Assembly: GCA_047495785.1 (NCBI GenBank)
Contig: JBLDXI010000043.1
Coordinates: forward strand, 558,001-622,000
Source of the DNA: Lepidodermella squamata
Lineage: Eukaryota > Animalia > Gastrotricha
Direction: 5' to 3'
DNA length: 64,000 bases
Numbering within the stretch: position 1 is the stretch's first letter; the number at the start of each line of letters is the position of its first letter. The notes below the pieces were generated by a model that ran no database searches, was not told where the DNA came from, and worked only from the letters and a program-made list of their open reading frames with translations. Both the position numbers and the translations under genes were made by a program. Shown in pieces: positions 12,642-49,102 of the stretch.

Positions 12642-15600
12642 ATGTCACGTTTCTCAATCATTGCTTTTTTACTGGTTGCCGACATGGCGGGTTCGGCTGT
12701 CGTCCCTTCCGTAACTGACCTGCAAGATTTTCGAAGTTTGACCGCATTGCTAGAGCGCATGGGGGCGGCGAGGCAGGCGGATAGCGAATCGCCCGATACC
12801 GCACCGCTCCTTCGCAACACCCCTACGCCTTCAACGTCTCTTGCTTCGCCGATAAAGTTGTGGTTTGGCAACACTTCGCAACCTGGATGGACTGATCCTT
12901 TGTACGTCGAAGCAGGCATGATCAATTCAAAATGAAATTGTTTTCAAAAATTCGTTTATTTTATTCATCCTTTACAGGTCCTTTGATTCGAGCAGAATTC
13001 ATGAAGATGCAGGCCTTTCTGTCCAGCGTTACATGCATACAATTCGAAAATCCAACCACCTTCACTCCTGGCCAAGCTGGCCTGGCAATCTTCAGCGAGA
13101 TTCCAGATGCGCTGTATGCCTTATTATAATAAAACAAATGAACCGTCCCCCTATTTTTGTTGCAACTTGCAGTTCTTCGACCGCTAAGATCGAACCGGAC
13201 ACATTGCTGCTAGCCATGCCAGACAAAGTTTTGACAGTTAAACAGTTGGTAGGCAAATTTCTTTCTTGTTTGCTCGTGAAGATTAATGATTGCCCAATGC
13301 CCAATGCCTGAGACTTAAAAAGCAGGCTGAATCCCCGACTGTGTTTCAAATATACGGAAATTATGTACGATATCTAGCATTTTGTTTCGCTACTAATAGA
13401 GAAATCAGGTTCCTGCCACGTTCTTCCTATTATCGGGATTCGCATGGGAAGTGCTGCGATCTGACTTACGCGATTACATGGAAGTCGACCCTGTTCTTCA
13501 AAACGAAACGTAAGTGATAACTAAGCAGAATGTCATCAACCGATCTGTGTAATCTATTCTAGGATTGACTACTTTATACAACGGTATCCCGACCTGACTT
13601 TCGGAGTGCCATTCGACTACGACTCTGGGACTCATACATCATTGCTCGCTGACAATGAAACCCGGTTGTTGCTACATCCGTACGACTCGCGCTACCTATC
13701 GACCATTGGGCATCGCAACTATATGTCTCATTACGATTTACTGAAAATGAATCATCTTTACAACTGCTTCGGTAAGCATTTTCGGAAACACAACATAGCT
13801 ATGGCATTTCATTTATGGATTCGAGATTATTCCTGCCAAATTTATCGACGAACCCATCTACTTGTACTTTTTATCACCCTTTCTTAACATCTTTCCAGAC
13901 TTGAAAACTAAAGTGATCTCTATTATTTGTCAGCTGATCCAAATTGCAACGGTACAAAATGCGAGAACGGTGGCTTCCCAAATCCTGCTAAAAACTGCAC
14001 GATATGCCAGTGCCCGTTCGGATTCGTAGGCCCTCGGTGCGAAACTTTCGCGTCTGCTGTTCCGCCGGGCAGCTGTGGCGGCCCAGTTGTAGTCTCTCCG
14101 TGCAACAAAACGTTCATCGAGTCTCCAGCTAGTTACACCGCTGGCAGCAGCTGTTCGTGGCTCGTTTCAACTGTTAGATTCATTTTACAATTTGCGGAAG
14201 AATATTTTATTCTTAAAAATATTAACAATCTTTTACTCTTTCTCATTATGTGCACTTTGACTTCATATCAGGGAGCCGATAGCGGTTTGATTTTCGTCTT
14301 CGAAAAAAGGCCCAACCTGCAATGTTCAAACGGTAAGGCCTAGCTTGTTTGATCTATGATCTGAAAACTCGGTGATTATTCTTTTAATTAAAGTGTCCAA
14401 AGTTTGTGACGATTTCGTTCTTATTCGCGATCTTGGTGGCGCGGAAAGCTATCCAGGATTCAAGTAAGTCTTTTCAACGCTGGCACCTCAAAACATAGAT
14501 TGAGGGCCTTAAATTGATGAGGCTAAAGAAAATTATAGGATGGACGGTATTGAAAAACATTGAATCAGCCTAATCAATTTAATATTGCAGATTTTGCGCG
14601 TGTGGTGTCAGCAGTGGTCGAGCGTTCGTCACAGACAAACCACAAGCTATGGTGCACATGCAGGCGATAGTCGGGCAGCAGTCGCCAGATCAGGGCTTCC
14701 AACTTGTTGTCTACGCAACTTGCAAGGGCGTTAAAGCTTCGAACCTGTCGAAGGAGATCATCCTCACGTCGACGGGTTACGACTACGAAGGCACGGACCT
14801 GAAGACAACCAGCTCCAATGAAACCTGCATCCCATGGACAGCGCAGTCTGTCTACGCCGATCTGGACCTTCCGGGAGGCGGCCTCAACGCTTCGCAGAAC
14901 GCATGTCGCAATCCTAACTCGGGACCTGGCCTCTCTTGTTTCGTCGGAAATTCGACTACGCTGGCTAGCTGCTCGACTCGTAAGCTCTCTCGTTAATTTT
15001 CCCATTTTTCCAAATGCAATTTTGTTTTCATATAGCGGTGAATAATGCAACTCAGCCAATGCGCTTTGTTCGCTGTGTCAACACTCAGACGAGCGAATTC
15101 GTTAGCTGTCGCCAGAATACGTGCCTATCAGGCGAGACTACTCTCAGCGGCAAAGCTGATTTGAAATCGTGCAACCAAGGCGTAAGTTTCAGACGGAAGA
15201 TTCTGGCCACTCGCCAAGCTCTCCCAACTTGAACTAAATTTACAGCTTGGACACTAGATGTCGGGTTTCCCAAACCTTAGGTTTCAGGTCTAGGGATAAG
15301 ATCCGTGGGCGCTTTACACTAGGATTTCTGATTTCCAGCAGTGGATGGGTTACGTCTTTAGGTCTTCGGTTTACCTTTTTTGTCTTTAGGTTACAAAGAG
15401 GTGCTACACGGGGAAAATATTCCGTTGTGTTATGAATACCATGAAGTGTGACAAGCCTGGCGAAACTGAGGTGAGCTATTTAACATGAAAAGAAGGGCTT
15501 CGCTACTATTTCTTTACCTAATAGAGCACGGCAACGGGACCTTTCAACGTGTTCCGCTACTTCTCTCGCAACTGGCTCGACTGTCAACACGTCGATGGCA

Positions 15601-15859
15601 TGGTACGCTTGAACTTGCTTCAACTTGTAAAATGTGCTCCCCTCAATGTTGATATTTTGCAGGAGTATTATCAGTGCTTTAAGAAAGGCTCATCTCCGCC
15701 TGCCTTCGTAGATTGCCGCCGCGACAAATGTCTTGATGATGAAGTTGGTATTTTTGACACTCTCTTTCTATGTAGCTGCGAATTCTTTTCGTCCTTTTTC
15801 AGAATCCAGTCGGACCTTTTGGGACGCCGATAAGTTGTTTTGCGAATAACAATAACTAA
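12642..15859 (+). CDS. Secreted inactive astacin-like / EGF / CUB / kringle-like / Cys-rich-tail protein, paralog 1 (many short exons)
   Basis: Signal peptide MSRFSIIAFLLV; TCIQFE; degenerate zinc motif ATFFLLSGFAWEVLRSD; PFDYDS; IGHRNYMSHYDLLKMNHLYNC; CENGGFPNPAKNCTICQCPFGFVG; CGG...CSWLV; DYEG...CIPW...ACRNPNSGPGLSCF; intron phases checked match paralogs 2 and 3. Confidence 0.85.
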
Positions 15860-17899: not shown

Positions 17900-20800
17900 A
17901 TGTTCGGCATCGCGATAGCTCTCGGCTGCTTGGTTGGACTTTCTTTCGCGCAGTATGTGACTGATATGCCAGCAGCGGTGAATGGAGCTTACCCGGAACC
18001 CACGTATTCGTCACCGATTAAGGTCTACATTCCAGAAGATCCTAAATGGGACGGAGGACTATTCGAAAGATTAAAAGTACCCCTCGTAGGTAAGAAAAAT
18101 CACCTGTCACGTATCAATTAGACCGGCCATTCGCCACGAAAATTATATTTCTTTATTAATCGGATTGAATACGTGAATACAAATAATAATTTGGTTAGAA
18201 TTGGCATTTTGGCAAAATAGCAACGATTACGTTTAGGCTCGAATTGGACAGTTCAGAATACAGCGGAATTGGGACTACAGGGACTATTTATACAATTTAT
18301 ACAGTATATACAGTATATCGGCCAACAGATTAGAATTGCTATTAGCATAGAATAGCATAGACCTGCCATAAGCAGTGGTTTGGATTTGATTTGATTTGCC
18401 ACTATTTTTGGCTATTTAGATTTATAGTGATTGATTGACGCGGGGCTGCCTTTTGATTTGATTTATTTTAATTTACCGTGAGGGATGCAATCGAAAAACT
18501 TGAATTCTTGGATGTCGCTGAACTATGATATTTCCGCCTTTTTTGATAGAAATTCGCTTTGGAGACCGACGTCAGTATCAAATTCGCGTTTTTTATCCAT
18601 AGCTTGAATTTTCAAAGCCCCCAGATTGGTGAACATCCTGATGTTCATGACTTATTGTGATTTATCGGTATCAATTATATAATTTGATTGATTAAATTAA
18701 TCAAGATTAAGTTCAGTAAAAGTCGTTGATTTTGATTGATTGAAAGAGGTCCGTGATTTAAATCCAAAGCTCTGACATCTCTATCAAGTTAGCCGACAAA
18801 TTTCTGCCTTTCATTTCAAACAGGACCGACTGCACTGAGCGCCTTCAATCTAGCATTACAACAATTTACGAGCACAACGTGCATCCGATTCGAATTTATA
18901 AAGAACGACAGCTTCACGATGGGCATGAAAGCCTTCGTACCAATCGGAAAGTTTGTGTGAGTATTAGAGATTTTGTCTTGAATCGGAACACGCGCAACAT
19001 CGAAAACTGTCTGTTTTCAGTGGTTTCGATACAGCTTTGCTTGGTGCTGGTTATTCAAACATCTACCCCTTCACTCAGTCTGCTTGCCTACCAGAAATAG
19101 ACGAAAGTGTGTACAAGCAGAAAGGGCTATCTGCCTACGTAAGTTATTGACGTGTTATAGTAGTTTCAAGTAATTAATAAAATCATGGAGGAATTTCCCG
19201 CGACTGTGCCAGTGAAGGCTCAAAAAGTCGACTTTCAGGCCAATAATATGATGTGCTCATAAACATATCCATATCCATATCCATATCCATATCCATATCC
19301 ATATCCATATCCATAAGTTGAATATCTGAATTGACACCCATATCAGACCAAAAATCAGATAGAAACGCAAGCCTCGAGTAAAAATGTGTTTATTTGTATT
19401 TTCAGGTGGAAGTGATTGTGCGAGGCATGATGTACGCCTTTGGCTTCCGGTGGGGCATCCGACGCCCGGATCAGGATGCTTACGTCAAAATCAATTCAGA
19501 TTGGGGGTAATTTAATTTAAACGTCGAAATCCTCACTAAATTTTGACCCCGCCTAACCTTAGGTACATCATTGTCCCAAATATGACGACATTCGACACAC
19601 CCTTCGACTACGATACGCTAGTTTCAGACCAAAATCGCTACACCGATGATGTAGCTGCCATTGAGCCGGTCGATTTGCGCAGCCTCATGTTCATTGGCAG
19701 CCTCGACCGCCTGTCGCATTACGACATCCTGCAGTTGAACCGTCACTATAGATGCTTCGGTGAGTTGCACCTCAAGTTTTGAGCGATTCATTTAGATCTG
19801 CATAGCGCAGCTGCTTTTTATCGAAGCGGACAAATCCGCACAATGAAGGAAGTAAAATTGCCTGTCTAGGAAAATAACAAGTTTGAGCCTATATTATTAA
19901 TATTATGAACAAATAAACAAATTAATCCGGTCGCGTTTAATTTTTCAAGTTTCCGCCTCCATAGTGCGATTTTCTATTATGCTTCTGCTAAAAGTGGCTG
20001 AGCTATTCAGAATTTCCGATTTAGATTTTTGCCTAATAACTGCCCTACTTCTGAAATGCTAAGTCAATCGAACCTTTTATGACAAAATCTTTTGTGGGAG
20101 GTAGACATATATTCGAATACCGCAGCCATTCCTTATATTATATGCTTTTCTAGATAATTTTACGAAATGCCAAACTCTGACGTGCCAAAACGGCGGTTAT
20201 CCCGACCCGACTCAATCGTGCGAAAAATGCCGATGTCCTAACGGATTCGGAGGAGATCAATGTGATACCTTCGCCCCGGCTATTCCGCCCAACAGCTGCG
20301 GCGGTCCGTTGGCCGTGACGCCATGCAAATCAACCACCATTATGTCGCCGAATTACCCGGGCCAGTACGCTCCTGGCAGTTCGTGCTCTTGGCTTGTCTC
20401 ATCGGTGACCTGCCTAACAACAGAACTGAGAACATTTGGTGATTTAATTTTTTGTATCCATAGAATTACACCAGCGGATTGATTTTTGCCTTTGAGGAGC
20501 CTCCCAAGCTGTCTTGTTTACAACGTTAGTCACCTCGTGTTTGTGAAACACCATGTTTACCAATTTTTCTTGTCATCAGTCACCAATATCTGCGATGACT
20601 ACGTCATTATTCGCGATATTGGCGCCGAAGGATACCCTGGCTTCAAGTATTGTTTTATATCATTGGAGGATGAACGGGAAACAACTCTTTCAACAGGTTC
20701 TGCGCTTGTGGCGTGAACAGCGGTCGGGTCTTTGTCACGGATAAGAGCCAGGCGGTAGTCTTTTTCCGATCAAAAGGCACAACAGCTCAGAACGGCTTCA

Positions 20801-21603
20801 AACTGGTTGTCTACGCGACTTGCCCGGGCATCGCCGCCTCGAGCCTCAGCCCCGAGTCGATCATCACACAGAGTGCTTATGACTACGAAGGCTCGGCCAC
20901 CGCGACCAGCATCTCGAACGGACCTTGCCTCGACTGGAACACGGCCGGGCAGAACTACTCGAAGCTGTTGTTCCCTCGCGGCAGCCGCGTCGATTCTGGC
21001 AAGGCATGCCGCAATTTAGGCACTGGGGCTGGGCTCGTCTGCCTGGCTGGGAACCCACCGACGCTGTCTCCATGCACTGCGCCGCCAAAGTTAGGTAAGA
21101 ACCCTTTATCGATGCTATTCTTGCTTGCAATGTGAATTTTAATGATGCGAATTAAATCGCATTCTTTTTATAGTGACGAGCGAGAATTCAACCGGCACGA
21201 GCAATTCAACATCGGACAAGGTGCGTGTGCGATGCGGCTCAAAGACCACGCTTCGATTCGTCGCTTGCCGCCGGCAGTGCAACAATGCAACTGAATTCAC
21301 GTTCCTCAGCCATGGCACTGTCTATGAAGATAGATGCAACGTAGCGGTGAATTATTATTATGATATTTCTTTAAATTTCTACGTTCTATAATTCTACTGC
21401 GCTTAGACTGCCCGGAAGTGCAGTACACCTGGAAAAGGTTTCAGGTGCGATGGCAAGTGCCTGGAAGGAGAGACTGAGGTAAGCCTATTCTTTATTAGTC
21501 ATTTATATTTTGAAATGTGTATCATCGGCCGCAGGTGAAGTACAACACGTACCTGCCATTCGCTAGGAACATTGACCAATGTTTGGGTTTGCCGCTGCAA
21601 TGA
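17900..21603 (+). CDS. Secreted inactive astacin-like / EGF / CUB / kringle-like protein, paralog 2
   Basis: Signal peptide MFGIAIALGCLVGLSFA; TCIRFE; IVRGMMYAFGFRWGIRRPDQDAYVKIN (exon at 19406); LSHYDILQLNRHYRC; CQNGGYPDP; SPNYPG; DYEG...CLDW...ACRN. Confidence 0.85.
19264..19315. repeat. (ATATCC)8 microsatellite in an intron
   Basis: Perfect hexamer tandem array. Confidence 0.95.
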
Positions 21604-24074: not shown

Positions 24075-27000
24075 TTCATTCTGAAAACAACATCGATTTT
24101 TTGTTTTAATTTTTGTAACCTTGGTCGCGTGCTTTGCAGTGCTAAATGACGCTTTCACAGCAAGACCTAGGGGAAATCAAAAAGATCTCCGAGGCCTCTA
24201 GCAAGCAGTTGCTTGATAAACTCGAACAACTTATTACTCGCCTCGCCGAACTTGAAAAGCAAAATTCTAAACAAGCTGCTACCATCAAGGAGCAAGGAGA
24301 GCGCATTTTCAGGCTTGAGTTGCGACTCAACGAAGCCGATGAACAACGTCTTCGACATACGGTGGTACTTCACAATGTGGAGCCGGCGGCAAGCGAAGTC
24401 TACTAGTCTCGCCCAGCACGTTGAGAAAAAGGTCCCAGACCTAGCTGGTGTTGAGTTCGAGGCTTTCCGCATGTCTCGCCAAGCCCCGAAACTGGTCAAG
24501 GTCGTCGTCAAAGGCGCCTCGGCTGACCAGGTTGTGAGGAAGGTTCTCGGCAATCGATCTGTCAAAAAATTTCGAACCGCCTTCCGGCAAAAAATCAACA
24601 AGGCTCTTTCGGCCAAAATCAAAGCTCTGCAGGACCTTCGTGCTGGCTCTGGTCAAGGTGAGCTGGTGTTCAAAATTCGGCTCAACGGGCTCCGGCTCGA
24701 GACTGAGGGTGCTGGCACATTCGCCTACGACCATGTGGCTGATGCCTTCGTCCCGATCGACATTGGAACGGATAACGTCTCAACCGGTCGGCGCGGCGGC
24801 AAGACTGGCGCGTAGGTTTCAGCAGGGCTACCTTTGAACCATGAACAATCTTGTGCTCTATCGTTTATTCTGTTTGCTATATCTGTTTATAGTCTAAATT
24901 GCAGGAGTGTAAAAAAAATAATTTAGCTGCCTTAACTAAATTTCTGATTTCATGTGAATATGACGTAATATGTCTTTGTGAGACGTGGCTATACCCTGGC
25001 ATCACTAATGCTATGTTAGAAGTGGGTTGTTATCGCGTGGCAGCTCGACGTGATAGGCCTACAAGGGCCGGTGGTGTGTGCATTCTTATAAAAAATCACT
25101 TCCAATTTTACGAGATCGATAAATTGAATGTAGATTCTGAAATTGTGGCTATTAATCTAATTTGTTCGAATAATCTATCAATTACTATTGCTTGTGTGTA
25201 TCGCCCGCCTTATAACGATGCGCCTTATCTGTCTGACCTAACCAAATGCATGAATTATCTGTGTGAAACTTCCACTTCTACAATTATCTTTCTCGGTGAT
25301 TTTAATTTTCCTCGCATTGATTGGCTAGATCCGAATTCTAACATTTTCAGCGATAAAACACTAGAATCAACTTTTCTGAATTGTTGCCAAGAAAATTCTC
25401 TCAGCCAATTAGTCTCTAAACCCACTTATCCCTCTTCAAACAGCATACTTGACCTTCTTCTCACTAACAACGCATCTTTAATTCATGATGTCGATGTCAA
25501 TTGCCCTTTTATCTTTTCTAACCATGACGCGGTCACTTTTAAAATTAAGCTCGAAAATCCCGTCCTATCGGAAAATAATTTTAATAATTCCAATAAAAAT
25601 TTCAGAAAAGCCAATTATGATGCCATATCTCGCGACCTTGCCAATGTTGACTGGATCACCTTCTTCTATGGCATCAATGACGTTGATTCAATGTATAAAA
25701 AATTGTTAATTCTTCTGAATGAACTCGTAGAAGCGCACGTGCCTAATCGCATTTTTCGTTCTCCTAATTCTTCTAATACTTGTAAATATCCTAAGCATAT
25801 ACGTCGTCTCGCTAAGAAAAAATTAGACATTTGGAAAAAACTGAAAAAATTACAAAAAAATTCCTTTGATCATTCTGTTCTTCTAACCAAATATAAAAAA
25901 ATATCTTTAAAATATGAAAAAACCGTGAAAGAATTCAACAACAACAGTGTGGTCAGCCTGATTGCTTCGAATAATATTCGCCTCTTGTGTAATTATGCTA
26001 ATAATCGTCTCAATTCTCGTTCTCATATTCCGGCTCTTGTCAATGCGCAAAATAATATTTGCACCTCTGATGTAGACAAGGCGGAGGCGTTAAATACTCA
26101 ATTTTCTTCTGTTTTTACCGTTGATAACAATACTTTACCTCCCATTTCTGAAAATGTCTCTAATCTAAAGCTCTCTTCTATCGAAATTGAGGACATCACA
26201 GTCCTAAATTCAATGCTGAGTCTATCTGATTCGTACGCCATCTGTCCTGACGGTCTCCCTACCATTTTCTTCAAAAAGCTCGCGCACTCCTTATATAAGC
26301 CTCTTGCTCACATATTCAGATTTTCTATTTCTCTATCTCATTTACCTAAAATTTGGCAAATTGCGTCTGTCAAACCGATACCAAAAAAAATTAACTCGAA
26401 AAGGCCGGTTGATTATCGACCAATTTCTTTGACCTCAGGGGCCTGCAGAATTCTTGAATCACTTATTAAATCGGCTATTCTTGATTTTTTACTTGAAAAT
26501 TCCTTAATTACAGCCGAGCAACATGGGTTTTTATCTCGCAAGTCGACTGCCTCTCAAATGCTCGAATGTTCCTTGGATTGGTGTTTTGCCATAGAATGCG
26601 GCGAATTCGTAGATATTGTATATATTGATTTTGCGAAAGCCTTTGACTCCGTATGTCACTCGAAGCTACTCGAAAAATTATCCCGCATTGGTCTTGATGG
26701 CGAAATTTTAAGTTGGATTTCTTCATATCTTTCTAATCGCACTCAATACGTTGTTGTAAATAATTCTGCTAGCTCTACAACGTCAGTCACTAGTGGTGTC
26801 CCTCAAGGCTCTGTCCTGGGCCCCTTACTTTTTCTCATTTATATCAACGATTTAGTTCCTATTCTTCCTGATGGAGTCAAAGTCAAGCTATTTGCCGATG
26901 ACTGCAAGTTGTATATAAAATTTTCTTTTGATAACGCGTTATTTTCTTCTTCTAACCTATCTCTCGCTCTTGAAAAAATCTTCGCTTGGGTCAGTGATTG

Positions 27001-27900
27001 GCAGCTCGGTCTCTCGTTTGAAAAGTGCGCTGTTATGCATCTTGGCCACAATAATCCTCATATTTCTTACTCTATTGGTGGACACAAACTTTCGATTTGC
27101 AATTCTTATAAAGACTTGGGCATTATTGTTGACAATGAACTTACCTTCCGATCTCACTATAATTCCATCATAACTAAACCCTACAATAGCGTTAATACTA
27201 TTCTTCGTGCTTTTAACGGCCAATCACCCTCAATGCTTACGTGGGCGTACCGTGTTTATACTAGGCCCTTGTTGGAATATTTACCTTCTCTTTGGTCGCC
27301 CTATAAAAAATGTGATGTGGAGCTTATCGAAAAAGTTCAAAAATATTTTACTCGCCGTGCTCTAGGCTTTAATTCTTATGACCTAACTCGCCCTTCGTAC
27401 AAAGAACGGCTTCGAATTTTAAAACTTGATTCTCTCGAAACTCGCCGCATTCACCTTGATCTTTATCTTCTTTATAAAATCTATAATAATCAAATTGATA
27501 CTTCGATCTCAAGAAATATACAATTACTTGATTCTAATACTCGCGGCCATCCTCATCGCCTCATGTTTTGCCTTCCTAACGGATCCTATCGTAATGCTAC
27601 CAAACCTATTTTTATAAATTATTTTCTAAATCGTGTCTTGCTTATATGGAACAATCTTCCTGATTCTGTTTTCATTTCTTCGGATAATTTTACTACCAAA
27701 TTCAAATTTTTCAAATCCAAAATTACTAAACTCGACTTTTCCAAATACTGTCCGTCCTGTAACTGATATCTTTTTATACATTGTGATTTGTGAATAGTAA
27801 AACTGCATACTCTTATTGTCGCACAACTCGATTAACTTACACTATATATGTACTAATTGGTTCAAAGTTAGCGGCCTGCGTGCCCTTTTGAAACCACGAA
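24075..27900 (+). mobile_element. Near full-length CR1-like LINE: ORF1 (24146-24815, one frameshift) and ORF2 with APE endonuclease and RT (about 24880-27766)
   Basis: ORF1 coiled coil plus VVLHNVE; ORF2 SLNCRS, DVICLCETWL, GDFNFP, ILDLLL, NHD, YRPISLTS, DFAKAFDSV, GVPQGSVLGPLLF, LFADD; boundaries approximate. Confidence 0.92.
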
Positions 27901-33505: not shown

Positions 33506-35633
33506 CGTAAAATGTCGTCCATTTTATGCCGCAAAAGGTGAGTAAATTTTATACATCAGCCTAACGTATATCCTATACATGTGTTGCGCGTAAAACTTGA
33601 GCCCTTGCATGTAAGTTAGTTGTATCCCTCAGCCTACTCCGAGCGTTGTTACCTTAGCGTTGTTTTCACATCCCGTGCTCGTGTAGCTAGAGCCCTCTCT
33701 ACTTACCTACGTGCTCGCCTGTGTTGCATTGAGTAAACAACCGCAGTGGTATTGCAGTGCGAGAGCGAGCGAGAGAGTGGCCGCTGCTTTTGAAGAAAAA
33801 ATAAATCCGCGTGTTTCCTTTCTTGGGCCTCGAGGGGCGACGCGTTGGGACATTTTTCACGTCTACAAGTTCACATTTTTTCATTAAGCGCCAAGCCGAA
33901 AGTTTGAGCTTCACGCACCATCGTTGCGGATCACATTTTTCCGATTCACTCGAATATTTGTCTAAAAAATCGAAAATTCTGGAAAGCAGTAACTGAAAAA
34001 TATGACAAGTTATCATTGGATAAGGTTCATTTTTCGTTGAAATTGTTGTTATTCTCAAGAATCAATGATTTGAAGAATCGATACTTGAAATTTTTTTCGT
34101 GGCGCGAAAATCTACCGCGGTTTGATAAGCGGACATAATTTCAAATTTTCAGGTAGTTATCACTGATTTCGAGTTTCGAAAATGTTATTATTATTTCTTC
34201 TTCGTTACAAATGTGCAAATCCGGATTAGGCAAATGCTCTCACTACTTGATGGAATTTTTTAATATTTTTTATTCGTTCCTGTCTCAAATGCTGCGATGT
34301 GTTCCCACATTCCTCTGATTTTGTTCAAGGATTAGAATTGCTGAGCCATTTAATGAGTTGTCTCACATTTCAACAGTGATTTCTTCCCATTAATGGATAT
34401 AAATCGAAAAATCCTTGCCGAAAACAGCTGTCCAGCGTGGGTTGCATCAATTAGCAACAGGCCGGATCGACTGCGAAAAAAACAACAACAAATGATACAT
34501 GTTGGCGATTATGGAGCACGGTTGAGTGACGATGCCGAGTTGGTGGCTCTCGCGATGACCACTTTTTCCAGGATAAAAAGCCTTAACAGAAAGTTATACG
34601 CACGTTAACCTTGATCTTATATGCGCGCGCGCGCTGTTTTGTTACGCGCTCTCGTAAAAAGATGCGCGAGTGTGCGCGCACTTTAATGCGCGCGCGCGTA
34701 GTAAATTATTACTGCGCAACAATAATCTGCGGTGCGGCGATCATCGCGCGGCTAAATTGCACGGCGAAGAGTCGCGAGTGTCGAGTGATAGCGACCATGC
34801 TACCTCGCTGCCCAGTGCTACCTAATATAACTTATAACTACAGCTCATCGTTAGCTCGTTTTTTCTTCAAGCTTCTCCCTTGATATTCCAATATTGCTAG
34901 GCGCCATACGTTAAACGCCTCAAAAACCGCAGCAGCTGTTCATCAATAAGCCGTTAGTCGAAGTTATGCGTAACGTTTACTATATTTACCTACCAACTGG
35001 TTTTTTTTACCAAGTCCTTAAATGAGAAAAACAGCCCCCTTATTCGCCACTGATAATCTTCAAAAATGACTCTCACAAGAAAATTATTGGACCTCTCTAA
35101 CTGAAAATGACCACCATTTTCAATTCAATATATTTCGGTCTATAGTATATGTAGAAAACATATTAAAAAATTTCGAATAATTTCTGAATTTTTTTATGCT
35201 ATCAGTATTTTCAGTAATTTTTAATTATTGAAAATTTCTTTGCCTAGAAAGCGGAGCCCAGTTGAAAATTTGGATAGCTAGGAAGTAGTAGGTATAAGCT
35301 ATTAATTAATGAATAGATAATTTTCTGCAATTTGTAAGCATTTACACTCGAAGCAGTTTTGAATTCTTGTTCCGATGATTTCAAGTTACTTGGCTTTATT
35401 ATTTTTGGAAAATTTCGAAACTTTCAAAAATTAACATAAAATCTATTTAGAGTAATTAGAGTAATCATTCAAACATCACTGATCATTTCTATGATTTGTA
35501 TAGAAATTGCGAACTCAGGTGAATTGGATTTTTTAGGTCTCAATATTGGGCCGATAACAATTATTGATACTATTTTTTTAAATATTTGTAGACTTTTTTC
35601 TTGTTAAGTGAAAAGAGGGTGAGCAGTAGAAAA

Positions 35634-38600
35634 ATGCCTGGCGGTCACTTTGACCCGGCCGATGCCGAGTACGAGTACCTGGTCGTCGACAAGAAGAAGT
35701 TCCAAGCGTTGTTCACGCGCGAGTTCGACATGAAGAAGAACTGCTGGATCCCGGACGAGAAGGAGGGCTACCTGCAGGCGACAATTGAATCGTCGAAAGG
35801 CGACGAGGTGACGGTGGCGACGAACCGCGGCGAGACGCGCACCGTCAAAAAGGACGACGTGCAGCAGTTGAACCCGCCCAAGTTCGAAATGGCGCCGGAC
35901 ATGGCTGATTTGACGATTCTCAACGAGGCGTCCATCCTGCACAACCTGAAAACGCGATACGCCAACAACCTCATCTACGTAAGTCACACTGTAAAATATG
36001 ATCAAGTGTCTTATAAACACAGTAGTAATCCAATTTAAGCCGAGAAAAATTTAATGAAAATTTAAAACAATAAATGATAAAGGACAATTTTTTAAATTGA
36101 AATTTTTCCATATTTCAATGAAAAATGAAAATTTGCAGGAATTATCGCAGGTCAGGACACTTCGCGCTAAACAGCGTTTCTTTCTTATTCTAATTGCTGT
36201 AAAATTAATTTTGAATGATTAATTGCGTCAATATTTAGTTCAGGGATTTTTGTACGGGCAACTTTCTATTATGCAACCAAGCCTGCACCATTTTTTCAGT
36301 ATTAAATGCGTCATTTCAGGAAATTCCAGTTTTTGTCCCTGAATTTGTTTTTAAATTACCAGATTAATTTTTTTCATAAATTTCAAATTTTTTAATTTTA
36401 ATTGAAAAACTGCGTCTATTGTTTGAAAAAATTCGTAGACTTATTCTGGGCTGTTTTGCGTCACCGTGAACCCGTACCGCTGGCTGCCGATCTACACGGA
36501 CACGGTGATCAACAAATTCCGAGGCAAACGGCGCCAGGAAATGCCACCGCACCTGTTCGCGGTCGCCGATAACGCCTACCAGTACATGCTGCAGGACCGC
36601 GAAAATCAATCAGTCCTCATTACGTAAAAACAATAATCAAAAACCTTTAAATCAGAAATTTCAAATTTCGATTTCCAGGGGTGAATCCGGCGCGGGTAAA
36701 ACTGAGAATACGAAAAAGGTCATCCAGTTCTTCGCCCGAGTTGCCCAGAGCCAGGACCCAGCCGCTCCGGGTCAGATCGGCCTCGAGGACCAGATCGTGC
36801 AGTGCAACCCGGTGCTGGAAGCGTTCGGTAACGCAAAAACTGTCCGCAACAACAACTCGTCACGCTTCGTTGGTTTTTTTTAACAACTATTGATTTTCAA
36901 GGATTTAATGAGTAATTGTTTCGCAATGCAGGGTAAATTCATCCGAATTCACTTTGGCCCACAAGGCAAGATTTCAGGCGCTGACATCGAGACTTGTAAG
37001 TCATTTCGAATTTTTTCGCAATTTTTCAATTGAATAATTTCGCTATTTTTAAAGACCTTCTCGAAAAGTCTCGAGTTACGTCGCAGCAGAAGGCCGAGCG
37101 TGGCTTCCACATCTTCTACCAACTGACTTCGAATGCCATCCCTGGCCTATGTGGTAAGCTTTGAGACCTGAAACAAATTATGCCTAAATTTCGCCAACAC
37201 TTTTGAAAATTGAAACGTTTTCTTGCGATTCCCGTGCTTGATGGATGTTGAATTTTTGAAAGCAACACTAGAAACGTTCTGTTTATCTGATTTTTTTCAA
37301 AGTATTTGGGATTTTATTTGAATTCGAAATCAAAATCAAATCTCGCTCTCTCTAAAATTATTTCCCCATCCAAAAATCATATCTCAAAAAACTGAAATCG
37401 CTGATATCTTAAATGTTTCAAAATTTCGGGAATCATGTTTGCTAGATTCAACCACAAAATTTCCGAGAAATTTACTACTCGAAATCTAGACTGGGAATTT
37501 TCTGCTTTTCATTATCCTTAAATTTAGTCCTTGAACCTCAAGTTTTGTCATGCGAATATCTTTCACCAGCTGTTGCTCAGTTATTATTTATTATTTTTAT
37601 TCAGACAAACTGCTGTTGAACCCGGACCCGTCGCAGTACACCGTTTGCAGCCACGGCGTGCTCACAGTCGAAGGCATCAACGACAAGGAAGAAATGATGG
37701 CGACGGACAAAGCCGCCGAGATTCTCGGCTTCTCCGACGAAGAACGAGCGAGCATGTACAAGAGCGCGGCCGCCATCATGTGGATGGGCGAGATGAAGTT
37801 CAAGCAACGGCCCAAGGACGAACAGGCCGAGGCAGACGGTACGGCCGAGGCCGAAAAGGTCGCCTACCTTCTCGGCATCAACGCCGCAGACCTGCTGAAA
37901 GCCCTCCTCCGACCCAAGGTCAAGGTCGGCAATGAAATGGTGGAGAAGGGCCAGAACTTGGAACAGGTCCTTTACGCGGTTAACGCCCTGGCTAAATCGC
38001 TGTACTGCCGGTTCTTCGACTGGCTGGTCCGGCGTTGCAACCAAACCTTAGACACAAATGCGAGACGGCAGTACTTCATCGGCGTCCTCGATATCGCCGG
38101 GTTCGAAATTTTCGAATTCAACTCGTTCGAACAACTTTGCATCAACTATACGAACGAACGCCTGCAGCAGTTCTTCAACCACCACATGTTCGTCCTGGAA
38201 CAGGAAGAGTACAAACGCGAGGAGATCGAATGGACCTTCATCGACTTCGGCCTCGACCTGCAAATGTGCATCGACCTCATCGAGAAACCGATGGGCATTC
38301 TGTCGATCCTCGAGGAGGAATGCATGTTCCCGAAAGCGACGGACAAAACCTTCCTCGAGAAGGTTTTCCACGGCCACATGGGCAAGTCGCCGAACTTAGC
38401 CAAGCCGAAGATGGGCGGCACGCAGCAGGCTCATTTCGAGATCATCCACTACGCCGGCACGGTTGGCTACAACACAAACGGCTGGCTCGAACGTAACAAG
38501 GACCCTTTGAACGAAACTGTTGTAGCCCTGATGGCCTCGGCTAAGGATAAAGTGTTGTCCTCACTTTTCGAGGCTCCGAAAGAGGAAGCTGGTAAGAAGA

Positions 38601-41600
38601 AGAAAGGTTCGTCCTACGCCACTGTCTCGGCGACCCATCGCGAGTCGCTGAATAAACTCATGAAGAACCTGTACTCGACGCATCCTCATTTCGTGCGTTG
38701 CATCATCCCGAACGAGCGGAAACAGCCCGGGGCAGTTGATGCGCATCTAGTCTTACATCAACTTCGCTGTAATGGTGTGTTGGAGGGCATTCGCATTTGC
38801 AGAAAAGGATTCCCGAACCGAATGATCTACCCGGACTTCAAACAACGCTACACCATCCTAGCCCCTAACGCCATACCACAAACTGGGTTCGTCGACGCGA
38901 AAGTTGTGGCGGAGAAGGTTCTCAAGGCGTTGAATCTCGATTTGAACGAGTACAGACTGGGCAAGACGAAGGTCTTCTTCCGAGCTGGGGTTCTGGCGCG
39001 TTTGGAAGATTTGCGTGACACGCGCCTGTCTGCTTCGATTTCGTACTTCCAAGCTTGGGTCCGAGGCTACATGATGCGAAAGTCCTACAAGAAACTGGAC
39101 GACCAACGAGTTGCCTTGGCTATGATTCAACGAAATATTCGAAAGTACCTAAGCGTCCGTGATTGGAAGTGGTGGAAATTGTACACTTTGATCAAGCCCC
39201 TTCTCAGCCAAGTACGTGCCGAGGATGAAATGCGCAAAAAGGAGGAAGAACTCGAGAAAACCAAAGCAGAACTCGAAAGAGTCGAGAAACTCGCGAAGGA
39301 GCTTGAGGAACAAAATGTTCGAATCACCCAACAGAAGAACGATTTGTTCATCCAGTTGCAGACCGAACAAGATTCAATGGCCGAGGCTGACGAGAAAATC
39401 GCTGGTTTAGTGACGAAAAAGGCTGAGATGGAGCAGCAGATTCGAGATGTCGAGGCGAAACTTCAGGAGGAGGAACAACGGGCTGAAACCCTGGAGAACG
39501 ATAAGACAAAACTTACTGAAACTATCGAATCTCTTCACAACAACATCTCGGACCTTGAGCATAACTTGGCGAAGGTCGAGCAGGATAAACTAGGCCGGGA
39601 ACAGCAGATTCGGAAGATGCAGGAGGAAATGAATCAGCAAGACCAATCTCTGGCTAAACTTGCCAAGGAGAAGAAAAACACTGAGGAACAGCTCCGTCAA
39701 ACCGCCGAAGCTCTTCAGGCCGAGGAAGATAAGGCGAATGGCCTGATGCGGCTGAAGCAGAAGCTCGAGCAGAACATCGACGAGTTAGAGCAAGCCTTGG
39801 ATAAGGAGAAGAAGACGCGCATCGATATCGAGAAGGCTAAACGTCGCATCGAGGCCGATATGAAGCAGACTCAAGCGGCTGTCGAGGAGTTGGAAAGGAT
39901 TCAGAAGGAGCTGGATGAAGCTTGTAAGAAAAAGGACCGTGAGCTTCAAGATTCGGCTCGGAAGTTCGACGATCAGGCTAGCGTGATTTCCCAGCTTCAG
40001 AAGAAGATCAAGGAACTCACGCAACGAATCGCCGAACTTGAGGACGAGCTCGAGCGAGAACGCCAGGGTCGTATCAAAGCTGAAAAAGCTCGGCAGGAGC
40101 TTCAGAAAGAAATGGACGATCTCGGCCAGCGATTGGACGAGGCAGGTGGGGCTTGCCAGGCCCAGGTCGAAATGAACCGCAAACGCGAGCAAGATCTTGC
40201 GAAGGCTAAGCAGGAAATCGAAACTCAGCGCGTGAACTTCGACGAGCAACTTGCTTCGGCTCGAAAGCGAGCCCAAGACCAGCTTGCAGAACTCTCCGAA
40301 CAGCTTGAACAGGTTCAACGGGCTAAATCGAAGGCGGAGAAGGAACGGAACCAAATCAAGCAGGAAGCTGACGAGCTTCATACCCAACTCGAAACTCTGG
40401 TGAAGACTAAGCCTGGTGTTGAAAAAGCTGTTAAGCAGCTCGAAGCTCAACTTGCCGAGGTGACTGCTCGCTTCGAGGAATCTCAGCGAGCTGCCCAAGA
40501 CGCGATTAGTTCAAGGTCGAAGCTAGCCCAGGAGAATGTCGAGCTAATCGAGCAGTTGGACGAAGCTCAACGTCAAGTTACAGCTTTGTCGAAGCTCAAG
40601 AACCAGATCGCTGCCCAGTTGGAAGATTCGAAGAAAGCAGTTGATGAAGAGGGTCGAGCTAAAACTCGTCTGCTAGCCGAACTCCGAGCTGCTCAGGGTG
40701 AGTTGGAGCGCCTCCGTGAACAAATGGAGGAAGACGAGGAATTGAAGAACCAACTCCAGAGACAACTCAATAAATCTACCCAAGAACTCTCCGACCTGAA
40801 AGCAAAGATCGCTAGTGGCCAAATCGGCGGGAATCAAGAGCAGGTCGAAGAGGTTCGCCGCAAGCTGAACGCTCGCCTCCTGGAGCTCGAGCAGCAGTTG
40901 GAAACGGTCACTTCGAAGGTCGTAACCCTGGAGAAACAAAAGGCGAAATTGGTCGCTGAATTAGATGATGCTAACATCTCTGCGGAAAGAGCCAATCTAG
41001 CTGCGCTTCAAGCCGAGAAGAAACAGCGCATTATCGACAAGTTGATCGAAGATTACCAGGGTAAAGTCAAAGCTGCGAACGCTGAGGCCGATGAGGCGAA
41101 ACGTGAATTGCGATCCCGATCGGCTGACGTCTTCCAACTGAAAAGTATGCTGGAGGAAGCTCGGGATGTTTCTGAAGCTCTTCGAAAAGAGAACAAGAAT
41201 CTTACTGAGGAAATCAAAGATTTGACTGATCAGTTAAACGAAGGTGGCCGATCTGTTGGCGAGGTCGAGAAACTACGTCGCCGGCTTGAAAACGAGAAGC
41301 AAGAACTTCAAGCCGCTCTGTCTCAGACTGAAAACGCCCTGCGGAATGAGGAATTGAAACTTCAACGAACCCTAGTCGACATCGCTCAATTGAAGCAAGA
41401 CCTCGAGAAGCGGCTTCAGGAGAAGGACGAGGAGCTAGAGGTTGCTCGGAAGTCACATCAACGAGCCTTGGAATCTGTCCAGGCTAGTTTCGAAGCTGAA
41501 ATCAAAGCTAAGAACGAAGCTTTGAAGGCTAGGAAGAAACTTGAGGAAGACGTGGCTGAACTCGAAGTTCAGGTCGATCAGGCTAATAAGACTAAGGCGG

Positions 41601-42713
41601 ACCAAGAGAAGTCACTCCGTCGTCTTCAACAGCAGGTCCAGGAGAACCAGCGAGTATTGGACGAAGTTACAGCTGAGCGGGATGATCTTCGAGAGCAGTT
41701 GTACTCACTAGACCGGCGTCAGATGGCGACTCATGGCGAACTTGCTGAGTTGCAATCTGCCCTGGAGCAATCTGAGAAGGCTCGTAAAACTGCCGAGACT
41801 GATCTGAGAGAGGCTGTTGATCGGCTGTACGAGTTCCAACAACAGGCTGGGTCGTTGACTGCTGCTAAGCGTAAACTTGAGGCTGATGTTCAGGCCATGA
41901 ACGTAAGGCATCAACTCATCAGCAATTTTCTTTCAAATTAGTATTATTTTTCTTAGACTGATCTCGATGATGCTATGCAACAGGCGAAAGATGCGGAGGA
42001 GCAAAGCAAAAAGTACCAGAGCGAGGTGAATCGACTTGTCGATAGTTTGAAGGCTGCTCAAGAGGCGGCTTCGCAATCGGAGCGTTTGCGAAAGCAGGCC
42101 GAACAGCAGCTGCGTGAGATGCAGTCGCGAATTGACGAGGCGGAACAGTTGACGTCACATACGAACAAGCGGCATCTGACGCGGATGGAGCAGTCGGTTC
42201 GCGAACTCGAGGCTGAGCTGGATGCGGAACGGCGGGCTCATGCTGAGACGCAGAAAATCGCCCGGAAGGCTGAACAACGAGCTAAAGATTTCCAGGCAAG
42301 TTTAGATTAATGCTATGATTGCGACGATGTTTTTCTCGAAATTTTAGGTTGAGGCCGAGGAAGAGAGACGGGGCCAAGCGAAGATGAAGGAGAGCATTGA
42401 TCTGTTCACGCAGAAGCTCAAATTCTACAAGCGTCAAATCGATGAAGCTGAAGAACTGGCAGCCGTTAACTTGGCGAAATTTCGCAAATCCCAGGCCGCT
42501 CTCGAGGAGGCCGAACAGCGCATCGAAGAGGTCGAGATTCAGATGGGCAAGCTGAAGTCTCAGTCACGCTCGACAGCCTCTCTGGCTGGAGGCCAGGGCG
42601 GCCAGTCAGGACCTAGTCGGGCAACGAGCACTATCGGCATCACCTCGTCCTCGGTGTCAAACCTGGCGACCTTCCCGGAAATGGTCATGAGCCCTCGCAA
42701 TAATCGAAAATAA
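35634..42713 (+). CDS. Mhc: Muscle-type myosin II heavy chain, 8 coding exons (35634-35978, 36439-36623, 36679-36868, 36932-36995, 37055-37153, 37605-41902, 41957-42295, 42348-42713), 1961 aa
   Basis: [15 protein letters not shown]-loop, [46 protein letters not shown] motifs, long heptad rod; exon lengths sum to 5886 nt in frame. Confidence 0.97.
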
Positions 42714-45224: not shown

Positions 45225-46035
45225 AGCTATTTGTCCTCCTTCCGCAGACCGCTTATTGCTTTCAAACTTATGGATTTAACTGTTGTAATGATTTAAATCG
45301 TAATCATCAAAACATCTGTGCGATGAGATCGCCTTTTTCTTTGCGGGTTACTCTGGTAATAAAAGTGACTGATCGCTCAATGGTCTGGGCTTTTTCATTT
45401 TTCGAAATAGAGATGAAGATGTGCAAAATTGGAATCGTTTTATAAAAATGCCGTGACCAGCAACTTTATTTGCCGAGTTAAGTTAAGTCCAGCAGTTTTG
45501 GCGTAGTACATTTTTATTCTCAGCTTTTTGTGCTGAGCAAATCTAAAGATTTATATTCAGTTTGATGATTAGGTACTGTGTGTGAGTTACAGCAAACATA
45601 AGAGGCTCATAAACGCGCGTATTATAAACATTTAAAAAAATGCACATCAAGGTATAGACGGGCAATTTTTCCACGTCAGGTTTTTCCTCCAGGTTAATCG
45701 CAACGATAATCATCTCTCTTGGCTGCGCTAAGTTGTCAATAGTTACATCTTCCCGCGCTCACAGGTAGTTCTGCGCAGCTCTTGCGTGATAGTGATAGTT
45801 TATCCAGTCGAGAACAATTAAAGTTCGGGCATGTTGAAAGACGCACGTTTGGGTTTTCTCAGCAAAGCGTGCCAGGTGTCGCGATCAGCTCGTGTTCGCA
45901 GTTGTCAGCAGTTGATCGCGTGCTTTGAAAAAGAATTCCGATGTTTAAAATTTCAATTCAACATTCAAAATTCAACATTTGCTTAATTTTTCCAAGATTG
46001 CTGATTCGCCTTCTTTTCACAATTTTCAAATAATT

Positions 46036-49000
46036 ATGATAATGAAGCGGTTAGCTGCAAAGTTTTGCAATGTTGCCGTCACAGCACTCTGTCTGCATGT
46101 CGCTAGCTGTTTAGCACAAACAACTGGATTGAAATACAAGAATGGTGGCTTGAACTTGGCAATAGAACTTATGGCAGTGTTTTACGGCGACGGGTTTAAC
46201 CCTTCGAGTCCGCCCTCCACGGCTGCCTGGAACCTGCCCATTCCGTTCGCCATTGCGCAGGGCGGCAACTGGTGGTACATAAATGGCCTTCAAGAGCTGT
46301 CTGCCAACCTGAGTGAGTGCGATATAATCGAACGCTGATATTGTTTTGATGACGTTGATTCTTTTTCTTTATTTGCGAAGATGAATCGGAAGCATCTGCG
46401 GTTAGGACAGCCATCGCCATGATCGAAAATTCGACCTGTGTCAACTTTACTGAGAAAACAGTTGTCTCGCCAAGCGATTCGCAATCTCTCATTTTCTTGG
46501 CTGACAGGTAAAAAGAGTGCAAGCTAATTCGGATTCCCAACTTCACATTGCCCTATTTTAATGTTCGTAGGATCAGCGACAAGGTGTATCGCACTACGTT
46601 TGTGTCGACAGCCATCAACGTGGTTTCAAATGACAGTCCGTCCTTGGTGCGTTACTTTTTCTAGTTGTGTGCTAGAAGAAACGCTCAATGTTTTCGAAAA
46701 TTGAAGCCGTCGAGACATCTTTGCGTTTCAACGTGAACCTTACGCTTCAGACCTGAAAATTCACAGAGTATTACATACACAGCAAATTAGGCCGTCCACT
46801 TCTAAATATTATAGATGAAGCCATCTGCAATGTTTTCTCAATTAGGTGGGCGACATTGTCAGTCAAATTCTCTTCTCGCTCGGCCTCACCTACGAACTGC
46901 GCCGGCCAGACCGTGACCAATACGTCAAGTTCCTCAGCTCTAGTATCGAACAAAAGTAGACTAATGCGAACAATCGCTATCATTGTAATTGCCGTCATTC
47001 ACATTTTTCAACACAGCTACGAAATATTCCCGGATGCGCCCACATATGGAAGCAAATTCGACGTCGAGTCGCTTCTGGCGCCGCACGTCATCTTCCGCGA
47101 CCCTCCCAAGCCCCAGAAGGACATCGAGCCCATAAACACCAATTACATTGGCAATTTCGCGCAAAAGCTGCGCCTGTCCCACTACGACATCTACAAGCTG
47201 AATATGCGGTTCAACTGCTTCGGTTCGCAATGCCCGTGAAATGATATATTATTCTCGGTTGTTTTCATTTCAGCAACGTGCACTGGTAGCCAGGCGGTTT
47301 GCCAGAACGGCGGTTTTCCGAACCCGAAACTGAACTGCGCCAAATGCGTTTGCCCGGCCGGCTTTGGCGGTGACCTGTGCGAAACCTACGCCCCGTCGGT
47401 CAACGCTCAGTGTGGCGGTGAAGTCGCCGTGTCGCCTTGCGATACTGTCATCTTCGAAACACCCAATTACCCCAACGTATACCCTGCTGACGCGAAGTGC
47501 TCCTGGCTGGTCAAAACCGTAAGCTGTTCTCCGTCAAGTAATTTCAATAACAAATTTCAATAATGTCACTTAGACAGCCGGCAGTGGACTGATTCTTGCC
47601 TTCGAACGCGATCCAGGACTCGCGGTCGCCAACAACAGTGAGTAGTTGCCACGCCTTGGAAAATGTTACAACGATTCGCCAATGCATAGGTGACAAATTC
47701 TGCGTCGATTTCATACAAGCTCGTGATTTAGGTGCTGATGGCTACTCAGGCTTCAGGTTAGTGATGGTCATTGCCATGATTATAGCTAAAATCTTAATGT
47801 TGTGCCTGGCAGGAGCTGTGCTAGCGGCGTTAGTGCCGGCCGGTGGTTTGTCACCGATAGAAATCAAGCTCTCGTTCGAGTCAGACAGCATCGACCAGGG
47901 CGGCAATGCTCGCGTGTACGCCTACGCGACGTGCCGCGGCGTGCGTGCTTCGACGTTCACGAAAGAGTGCCGCATCACGCCACAGGCCTTCGATTACGAG
48001 GGCGCCGCGGTGAATACAGGCTCGGAAGGCCAGCCTTGCGGGCGATGGGCAGTCGGGGGCAAGTTGATAAATTACTTGCAGTTGCCACATGGCAGCAACA
48101 TTCAGTCAGACGGCAAATGCCGAAGGATAAGCCGATGGGGCCAATTCTTGTGCATCCAAGATGAGTACTACACGGTCGACTGTAATCTGCCGCCCCTTTG
48201 CCGTAAGACTTTGCTTTTGTATAAATCATTTATTATGTGATCTGCTATTCAGCCTAAAAAACTAGGTCATTAATAACTCCAAAATATTGTCTCGAGATGA
48301 AATCCAGCGATTGAAGTACGAGATTAGGATGTAATCAAGGTAGATTCAGTAAATTTTTGAGACACATTTTTCGCTGGATTGGCGGGCATAATTCTCTTGC
48401 GAAACTGGTTTTAGGAAATGATAATTTGTTTGGCTTTGCAGGCTCTATCCTCACGAGGTGTGTTGCTTCGGCGACCGGCGAGTGGCGCGGCTGCCGGCGT
48501 GGCTGCTTAGCTGACGAGTACATGCTCAAGGGATCGGTCAACCATGTCAAAAAGAATTGCAACCGCGGGGTAATAATGACGCTAGGATCGATTTCTTTGC
48601 TTAATGATGATTGCTAATACAGCCCGCCAGAAAGTGCATAAATCGAGCTACCGGAGCTTTTCGATGCATCGGCAACGACATGAAGTGCAAGAAAGACGAG
48701 GGAGTACGTGTCGCGAAGTTGCCTCCGATTCGCTCGCTATTGTTTTGTGCCTGTTTCAGGTCCAAATCTACAATTCTTACAGGCTGTTCCGCCGCAACTG
48801 GATCCACTGCCAGCATAAAAGCGGAATGGTTGTAAAATGACAAGTGTGGGCTCTCCAAAATGTGACTTTTGTGCGTGTTTCGTAGAAATACGTTAGGTGC
48901 TTCGATGGCAAGACGCGTCGATTCAAAGACTGCCGTCGCAAGGATTTGGGCTGCCACGTCGGCGAGGTGAGCAGGCAAACGCCCAATTTTAAATTATACC

Positions 49001-49102
49001 TATTCGGTTATTGTTTAGATTTCCCTTGGACTGACCTACGCCGACCCGGTCACGTGCTACACCGAAATTCGACGGATTGTCGTTCCCGATGACCAAGTCT
49101 AA
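46036..49102 (+). CDS. Secreted inactive astacin-like / EGF / CUB / kringle / Cys-rich-tail protein, paralog 3
   Basis: Signal peptide; IENSTCVNF; IVSQILFSLGLTYELRRPDRDQYVKF (exon at 46846); LSHYDIYKLNMRFNC; CQNGGFPNP; TPNYPN; six-Cys kringle ECRIT...DYEG...CGRW...CRR...C...C...C. Confidence 0.85.

Follow-up and report, generated by a model that had tools for sequence, protein, structure and literature searches.

Three paralogous genes, here called P1, P2, and P3, lie on the forward strand of a 64,000-nucleotide stretch of DNA (the window; C43:558001-622000) from the gastrotrich Lepidodermella squamata, whose eukaryotic genome of 121 Mb has short introns. Their predicted products are probably secreted, noncatalytic homologs of astacin metalloproteases (pseudo-astacins) that function by binding. 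Each protein would consist of a signal peptide, a short N-terminal region, an astacin-like domain free of metal ligands, an EGF-like module, a CUB domain, a divergent kringle, and a series of short cysteine-rich modules. At the level of predicted gene models, the comparisons described below establish homology to astacins, loss of the catalytic residues, a shared and mostly intact gene structure, and an expansion from an active type of gene.

The loss of catalysis is most evident at the former zinc site. Active astacins of the same genome were used as the reference for the replacements, namely L002, which carries HEILHSLGLHHEHQRPDRD together with SIMHY at the Met-turn, and L051, which carries HEVGHALGMYHEQMRPDRD together with SVMHY. 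The corresponding features of the three genes are as follows.

13409-13509, + strand: P1 exon 4, former zinc-binding helix, PATFFLLSGFAWEVLRSDL
13415-13468, + strand: 18-residue zinc-motif string of P1, in the exon starting at 13409
13618 (start), + strand: Met-turn string of P1
19406-19506, + strand: P2 exon 4, former zinc-binding helix, VRGMMYAFGFRWGIRRPDQ; Pfam Astacin positions 78-109, E 0.0065
19421-19474, + strand: 18-residue zinc-motif string of P2, in the exon starting at 19406
19609 (start), + strand: Met-turn string of P2
46846-46955, + strand: P3 exon 4, former zinc-binding helix, VSQILFSLGLTYELRRPDR; Pfam Astacin positions 80-114, E 0.00048
46861-46914, + strand: 18-residue zinc-motif string of P3, in the exon starting at 46846
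47063 (start), + strand: Met-turn string of P3
First zinc-binding His: replaced by A (P1), R (P2), S (P3)
Catalytic Glu: replaced by T (P1), G (P2), Q (P3)
Second zinc-binding His: replaced by L (P1), Y (P2), F (P3)
Third zinc-binding His: replaced by W (P1), W (P2), Y (P3)
Met of the Met-turn: replaced by T (P1), V (P2), L (P3)
Tyr zinc ligand: replaced by T (P1), D (P2), P (P3)

At the positions of HExxHxxGxxH, the genes read ATFFLLSGFAW (P1), RGMMYAFGFRW (P2), and SQILFSLGLTY (P3), in which Gly alone is retained, and the SxMHY Met-turn, which is SIMHY or SVMHY in active copies, has become SGTHT (P1), TLVSD (P2), and SLLAP (P3). An earlier note on this DNA had reported these strings, and all of them were found on the + strand, the zinc-motif strings in the exons to which it had assigned them and beginning 6-15 bases inside the exon starts that it gave. 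It had also held that the three His, the Glu, and the Met-turn Met are gone; every one of these is indeed replaced, as is the Tyr ligand. The turn Gly and R-x-D, described there as kept, are present in all three genes. P1 and P3 retain the family-specific Glu after the third His, where P2 has Gly, and the last Arg of xxRxDR is retained in P3 only (RSDL, RPDQ, and RPDR for P1, P2, and P3, respectively). The further claim that cysteines are kept applies to the outer astacin disulfide, formed in the alignment by the Cys of TC[IV]xF in exon 2 and that of the terminal NCF of exon 5, but not to the inner one, which is gone in P1 and P3 and has a single Cys left in P2.

The possibility that an alternative exon supplies an intact HExxH had been raised as grounds for rejecting the idea of dead enzymes. 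No HExxH occurs in any + frame of the P1, P2, and P3 gene spans, and no HExxHxxGxxH occurs on either strand of the window; therefore, no alternative exon can supply the site. A proposal that the third His is always replaced by an aromatic residue is true of P1-P3 themselves (W, W, and Y) but not of the closest paralogs of P1, which have Y, S, S, and A. By subfamily, this position is W, Y, S, S, or A in the P1 group, always W in the P2 group, and commonly Y or F in P3-like genes. Because it varies in this way within the P1 subfamily, the idea that an aromatic plug might fill the zinc pocket is weakened.

About 20 residues before its astacin-like domain, P3 carries an FYGD motif (46180-46200) that resembles the FxGD aspartate switch of propeptides, although no zinc is left in P3 for such a switch to block. 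No FxGD-like motif is found in P1 or P2, and in P2 the spacing from signal peptide to domain is only about 20 residues.

Gene models were derived from tblastx comparisons among the three regions and then from all GT/GC-AG pairs that keep the homologous frames open, and they were checked exon by exon.

12642-15859, + strand: gene P1, 14 exons, 1998 coding bases; no stop, all junctions GT-AG except the intron-1 donor
12642-12915, 12978-13113, 13173-13248, 13409-13509, 13563-13771, + strand: P1 exons 1-5
12916-12977, + strand: P1 intron 1, with GC donor CAG/GCATGA at 12916, the sole frame-compatible junction
13563-13771, + strand: P1 exon 5, C-terminal astacin subdomain with the former Met-turn DSGTHT (Pfam Astacin; 3VTG, 3LQB)
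13934-14172, 14272-14332, 14394-14463, 14591-14979, 15036-15181, + strand: P1 exons 6-10
13934-14979, + strand: P1 exons 6-9, EGF-like, CUB, and divergent kringle
15390-15470, 15525-15602, 15663-15743, 15803-15859, + strand: P1 exons 11-14
15036-15859, + strand: P1 exons 10-14, short Cys-rich modules; exons 11-13 of 78-81 bases each, both flanking introns in phase 0
17900-21603, + strand: gene P2, 12 exons, 1824 coding bases; all junctions GT-AG, no stop
17900-18089, 18824-18956, 19021-19138, 19406-19506, 19563-19759, 20154-20404, + strand: P2 exons 1-6
20464-20524, 20580-20646, 20697-21094, 21174-21340, 21407-21478, 21535-21603, + strand: P2 exons 7-12
46036-49102, + strand: gene P3, 14 exons
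46036-46312, 46381-46507, 46571-46646, 46846-46955, 47017-47222, + strand: P3 exons 1-5
47274-47518, 47574-47637, 47690-47756, 47813-48202, 48442-48569, + strand: P3 exons 6-10
48623-48703, 48760-48828, 48886-48966, 49019-49102, + strand: P3 exons 11-14
47874-47878, + strand: frame break in P3 exon 9; homologous frame 47814-47876, then the next frame 47878-48201

The first nine introns lie at homologous places in P1, P2, and P3, with identical phases of 1, 2, 0, 2, 1, 0, 1, 2, and 1, in agreement with the statement of the earlier note that intron phases are kept; the start (12642) and end (49102) that it assigned to the whole group are likewise correct. For P1 exon 3, a 3' end at 13227 or 13236 is possible instead of 13248, and P2 ends two modules short of P1. 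Two repeats are found in introns of P2: a hexanucleotide microsatellite (ATATCC, about ten copies, 19256-19315) within intron 3, and GATTT-type repeats in intron 1, which is 734 bases long.

A Pfam scan was run, exon by exon, on stop-free segments of the three regions. Matches to Astacin (PF01400; MEROPS family M12A) are collinear in all three genes, with exon 2 covering profile positions 11-46, exon 4 covering 78-114, and exon 5 covering 127-188; P1 exon 5 scores 28.8 bits (cut-off 22.5). Exon 3, which corresponds to profile positions of about 47-77, gave no Pfam match. In a PDB profile search, an exon 5 profile built from 14 members of the family aligns with solved catalytic domains of astacins over residues of about 140-199, among them 3VTG (medaka HCE-1), 3LQB (zebrafish hatching enzyme), and meprins.

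The downstream domains are more divergent. Exon 6 resembles the first part of CUB (PF00431), a domain here split over four exons, at 18.7-19.6 bits against a cut-off of 21.4, and it also gives a weak Pfam match to EGF. P1 exon 9 scores 28-29 bits with Kringle (PF00051), under the cut-off of 34.3, and no Kringle match was obtained for P2 or P3. The profile check with Astacin, CUB, and Kringle that had been suggested thus bears out the first of these domains and leaves the other two below their thresholds. A profile of exon 9 matches multikringle proteins at E 1e-33 in a search of 1.84 billion representatives. All six kringle cysteines are present in P3, and the first and last are missing in P1 and P2, where the outer kringle disulfide is lost. 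Every gene begins with Met and a hydrophobic stretch, as expected from the earlier description of retained signal peptides, and from this N-terminus the proteins are predicted to be secreted.

No Pfam match was found in the C-terminal Cys-rich modules. These tails (15390-15743, 21407-21603, and 48623-48966) are built of modules of 23-27 residues, each encoded by one exon with phase-0 introns on both sides. Most modules have two or three Cys in a pattern of about C-x6-F-x-C-x5-C, and their number varies among the paralogs.

The three genes had been presented as a family of three, a view that must be given up, since each gene has nearer paralogs at other loci and the genome contains at least 150 copies of the architecture. 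The exon 5 profile has 95 matches genome-wide, and the CUB-kringle exon has 150 scored matches (199 candidates), nearly all of them full-length and in open frames. HExxHxxGxxH motifs number 37 genome-wide, compared with 4 in a reversed control; this count was made with a 33-place pattern and takes in other metzincins. A motif split by an intron would escape the pattern, and in the dead astacin family the entire motif lies on one exon. When coordinate lists were compared, only two intact motifs, at C3:3038816 and C7:92955 (L051), adjoin a CUB-kringle exon. In 30 loci sampled with exon 5, the pattern found 24 zinc-motif regions, of which 23 are dead, P1-P3 themselves being three of these. Every subfamily has its own replacements in this region. 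The astacin-EGF-CUB-kringle class of this genome therefore appears almost wholly catalytically dead, with about 150 genes against about two that are predicted to be active.

The P1 group comprises L034, L035, L039, L041, and L042, with exon 5 identities of 69-77%, and two of its members (L035 and L041) are on the same contig as the window, 110-120 kb upstream of it. By alignment of exon 5, the P2 group consists of L036, L037, L038, L040, and L043, and P3 belongs to a loose group with L044 and L045 only. Because P1, P2, and P3 are just 26-34% identical to one another and have closer relatives elsewhere, they are, judged by these identities, old paralogs from three subfamilies; the earlier impression of very divergent paralogs was accurate.

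Other dead astacins are also encountered in this genome. Four loci, L004 (C17:2008305), L008 (C17:2080283), L014 (C12:832203), and L018 (C19:85484), encode intronless astacin domains with very high Pfam scores. The zinc ligands are missing here too (as in FWIIFHILGLDAEH and AQQIFVALGFRFEH), and the domains occur in other architectures, some as tandem domains within one long open frame. By these features, the four loci are a second, independent class of putatively dead astacins. The 286-residue open frame of L056 was considered as a proxy for an intronless dead domain and was rejected, as it reads through introns.

Relatives were also sought outside the genome. When the CUB-kringle exon profile was searched against the 1.84 billion representatives, it matched kringle proteins generally and, over its whole length, three or four short fragments; no annotated full-length relative was found in this search. 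The contigs of the fragments are metagenome assemblies (L062-L064, ENA) in which active astacin-EGF-CUB-kringle genes are arranged in tandem; their zinc motif is intact (HEVGHALGLFHEH or HEIGHTLGLHHEH), and they have S[VI]MHY and EGF, CUB, and kringle domains. Their introns are fewer than those of the window genes, and their kringle is canonical (PWCY, six Cys). The contigs are eukaryotic, probably from a relative of this animal, and they could serve as an outgroup. Among named proteins, those nearest to the active L063 come from annelids, molluscs, and nematodes; they are dpy-31-like and nas-36-like astacins with no more than 42% identity. The exon 5 pattern of the dead family gave 84 pattern matches in JGI metagenome contigs, none of which was confirmed. 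There is thus no evidence for the dead subfamilies outside this genome, a weak absence given that no close relative is represented by an annotated proteome in the collections searched.

Selection was assessed by the ratio of nonsynonymous to synonymous substitution rates (dN/dS), using Nei-Gojobori (NG86) counts summed over exon-wise codon alignments. Against L034, L035, L041, and L042 (dS 0.6-0.7), P1 yields dN/dS values of 0.32-0.38 for exons 2-5 and 0.09-0.14 for exons 6-9, and against L039 (dS about 1.0) the value for exons 2-5 is 0.22. Comparison of P2 with L038 and L040 gives 0.18-0.26 for the astacin-like exons and 0.10-0.13 for the EGF-CUB-kringle portion. The dS of P1 and P2 relative to their closest paralogs is 0.6-0.9. 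On the terminal branch of P1, three-point estimates of omega, the dN/dS of a branch or region, range from 0.20 to 0.26, and the upper ends of their bootstrap intervals lie at 0.39-0.77. No close paralog of P3 exists, and its dS values are saturated. As measured by these substitution counts, P1 and P2 are shown to be under purifying selection. The earlier inference of selection for a nonenzymatic role is thus upheld for P1 and P2, with dN/dS well below 1, and cannot be shown for P3.

Constraint is unevenly distributed. Amino acid variation in the P1 subfamily falls mainly into two stretches, the former zinc helix and the 17 residues that begin at the former Met-turn; the remainder of the astacin-like domain is nearly fixed. 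Pooled omega for this subfamily is 0.23 in the remaining scaffold and 0.11 in the EGF-CUB-kringle portion; the value of 0.48 for the two variable stretches is biased upward because they were chosen as the most variable after the alignment had been seen. These estimates show a gradient of apparent constraint, which is greatest in EGF-CUB-kringle, intermediate in the astacin scaffold, and least at the former active site. Positive selection on the former active site was considered and rejected, given an omega of about 0.5 and a maximum of 0.98 in any pair.

Such a pattern invites a different interpretation. The approximately 150 dead genes, P1-P3 included, might form a diversified extracellular recognition repertoire that is immune-like, adhesive, or prey-binding, in which the disused substrate cleft would be a variable binding surface and EGF-CUB-kringle a constant stalk. 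The number of genes, many of them in tandem arrays, and the focusing of variation in the former zinc helix and behind the former Met-turn are what such a repertoire would display, and if real it would be a receptor repertoire on a metalloprotease scaffold. However, a dN/dS of about 0.5 when pooled and no higher than 0.98 per pair gives no sign of positive selection in the variable stretches, and the same pattern arises if a disused active site simply ceases to be constrained. Release from constraint accounts for the variability of the former site no less well than a new binding role does, and the repertoire hypothesis is accordingly considered unlikely.

Several observations weigh against the reading of P1-P3 as functional noncatalytic proteins. 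For the P1 branch, the astacin-like exons taken alone give omega values of 0.33-0.56, and in two of the three triplets the bootstrap interval extends to 1. For the terminal branch of P2, the outgroups are saturated. The splice models, including the GC donor of P1, are predictions from genomic sequence. As assembled, the frame of P3 stops near 48161, upstream of the kringle, and, in a second sample (X1), P3 differs from the window copy by a Cys-to-Arg change at a conserved EGF cysteine (47351), by a triple change that turns Gly into Phe in the kringle, and by a total of 10 synonymous and 12 nonsynonymous listed coding differences. Finally, the binding or scaffold role, with EGF-CUB-kringle carrying most of the function, is a part of the reading that we infer.

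The claim that there are no frame breaks does not survive for P3. In exon 9, the frame changes at 47877, so that SCASGVSAGRWFVTDRNQALV is encoded in one frame and the remaining CUB and kringle in the next. Alternative acceptors or retention of intron 8 were examined as explanations of this change and rejected, because with either one, a segment that is also conserved in P1 and P2 would be lost or replaced. X1, of unrecorded kind, is the single public run with the locus, and a search for sequencing runs of this organism turned up no RNA run; X1 was available as assembled contigs, only one of which spans the break. This contig has 5 extra letters behind 47874, and its frame is continuous, reading QALVHFESDS. 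Over most of P3, the divergence between the listed X1 contigs and the window is about 1.5%, and because of this difference X1 is provisionally taken for another individual or haplotype. Since the X1 contig has 5 more letters and a continuous frame, the break in P3 would be a segregating null allele carried by the sequenced individual or else a local error of the assembly.

All three genes could also be decaying pseudogenes of a family in turnover, in which case the observed conservation would record past selection only. The break in assembled P3 and the damaging Cys-to-Arg change in the other allele could be taken in this way, as could the mutation of the P1 intron-1 donor from GT to GC (five paralogs have G/GT at the homologous place) and the shortening of P2 by two modules relative to P1. 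Yet the frames of P1 (14 exons) and P2 (12 exons) are complete with intact splice sites, the bootstrap upper bounds for omega on the P1 branch are below 1, and all five P3 exons past exon 9 are open and correctly spliced in the model, with a continuous frame in X1. Frameshifted transcripts with neutral dN/dS had been named in the earlier note as evidence that would overturn its view; a frame break does exist in P3, but the ratios of P1 and P2 are not neutral. General decay of the three genes is improbable on this evidence.

Pseudoenzymes often control their active relatives (PMC11266112), and P1-P3 might regulate the few active astacins, either as substrate or inhibitor decoys or as noncatalytic partners acting through CUB and kringle. 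At C7:90-103 kb, active genes do have dead neighbors with the same architecture. Nevertheless, the excess of dead genes of this architecture, about 150 to about two that are active, goes far beyond any regulatory need, and the cleft residues that a substrate decoy would require are the least conserved, so that such a role is very improbable. That P1-P3 are still metalloproteases with other ligands is hardly credible: no support for it was found beyond the His in the former Met-turn of P1 and the Glu behind the third-His position in P1 and P3, and the substitutes for the three His, the general-base Glu, and the Tyr vary from paralog to paralog, with no common alternative site conserved.

The reading of P1-P3 as secreted pseudo-astacins can be set out as a sequence of probable events. 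Their ancestor would have been an active astacin-EGF-CUB-kringle protease, a type that persists in this genome and on related environmental contigs, and the zinc site would have been lost before the three subfamilies split. P1-P3 would then be a small part of an expansion to about 150 genes, almost all dead. The proteins would work extracellularly as binding proteins, whether adaptors, matrix components, or ligands; the conserved EGF-CUB-kringle portion would have the main part in this, and the inactive protease fold would be a structural or secondary binding module.

Other features of the window include mobile elements and further genes. Between P2 and P3, a 957-residue open frame (24893-27763, + strand) encodes the endonuclease and reverse-transcriptase domains of a non-long-terminal-repeat (non-LTR) retrotransposon, and further reverse-transcriptase fragments lie at 10073-11092 and 28345-29730. 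A myosin heavy chain gene occupies 35592-42710 (+ strand), with a 1468-residue exon that encodes most of the motor domain and the tail. From 50300 to 56200, on both strands, there are four tandem gene copies whose N-terminal part is hydrophobic and conserved (GISHMTLLIVSLAFTLINICLII...YNWQDRFVGP) and precedes Thr/Pro/Asn-rich repeats; these copies have no Pfam match.

Inactive protease homologs are well known for serine proteases and ADAMs. No astacin-type pseudoprotease family is described in the literature that could be searched, where queries on inactive astacins gave nothing specific. A 2024 review of pseudo-metallopeptidases covers ADAMs and M14 members and includes no astacin (PMC11266112), and a 2023 survey of astacins takes in only sequences with intact zinc motifs and lists kringle among the accessory domains. 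Provided that the genes described here are expressed, nearly a whole protease family has been converted in this animal into nonenzymatic secreted proteins. Such a family would provide a large natural series on the metzincin fold without its metal, showing which positions are free to change once catalysis has been lost.

Comparison with known systems places P1-P3 closest to active astacins. The astacin-EGF-CUB type corresponds to subgroups III and V of C. elegans (PMC2824743). Its active representatives, the dpy-31-like and nas-36-like proteins, share with P1-P3 the order of signal peptide, astacin, EGF, and CUB, but they are proteases that keep HExxHxxGxxH and SxMHY and have TSP1 or nothing after CUB, whereas P1-P3 are dead and continue with a kringle and Cys-rich modules. 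The active astacin-EGF-CUB-kringle genes (L051, C3:3038816, and L062-L064) have the same architecture as P1-P3, including the CUB-kringle exon, and their Met-turn region and C-terminal subdomain align full-length with those of the window genes; unlike P1-P3, they have an intact zinc motif and Met-turn.

More distant parallels are found in other protease classes. HGF and MSP are secreted, combine kringles with a dead serine-protease domain, and act as ligands or adaptors, and in arthropods dead serine-protease homologs make up large families. The logic of these systems is the same as that proposed for P1-P3, although by analogy only, as both the fold and the catalytic class differ. Among metzincins, to which P1-P3 also belong, the pseudopeptidases ADAM2, 11, 18, 22, 23, and 32 have lost the His ligands and the Glu and act through protein binding (PMC11266112). 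They differ from P1-P3 in being M12B membrane proteins with a disintegrin domain and a Met-turn that is usually kept, and in numbering a handful of genes rather than about 150. As in P1-P3, their third His is often replaced by Y or W (GITYD, GMMWN, GLTYD, and GIQWE; PMC11266112), and this parallel suggests that such a replacement might be a common way to stabilize an empty site.

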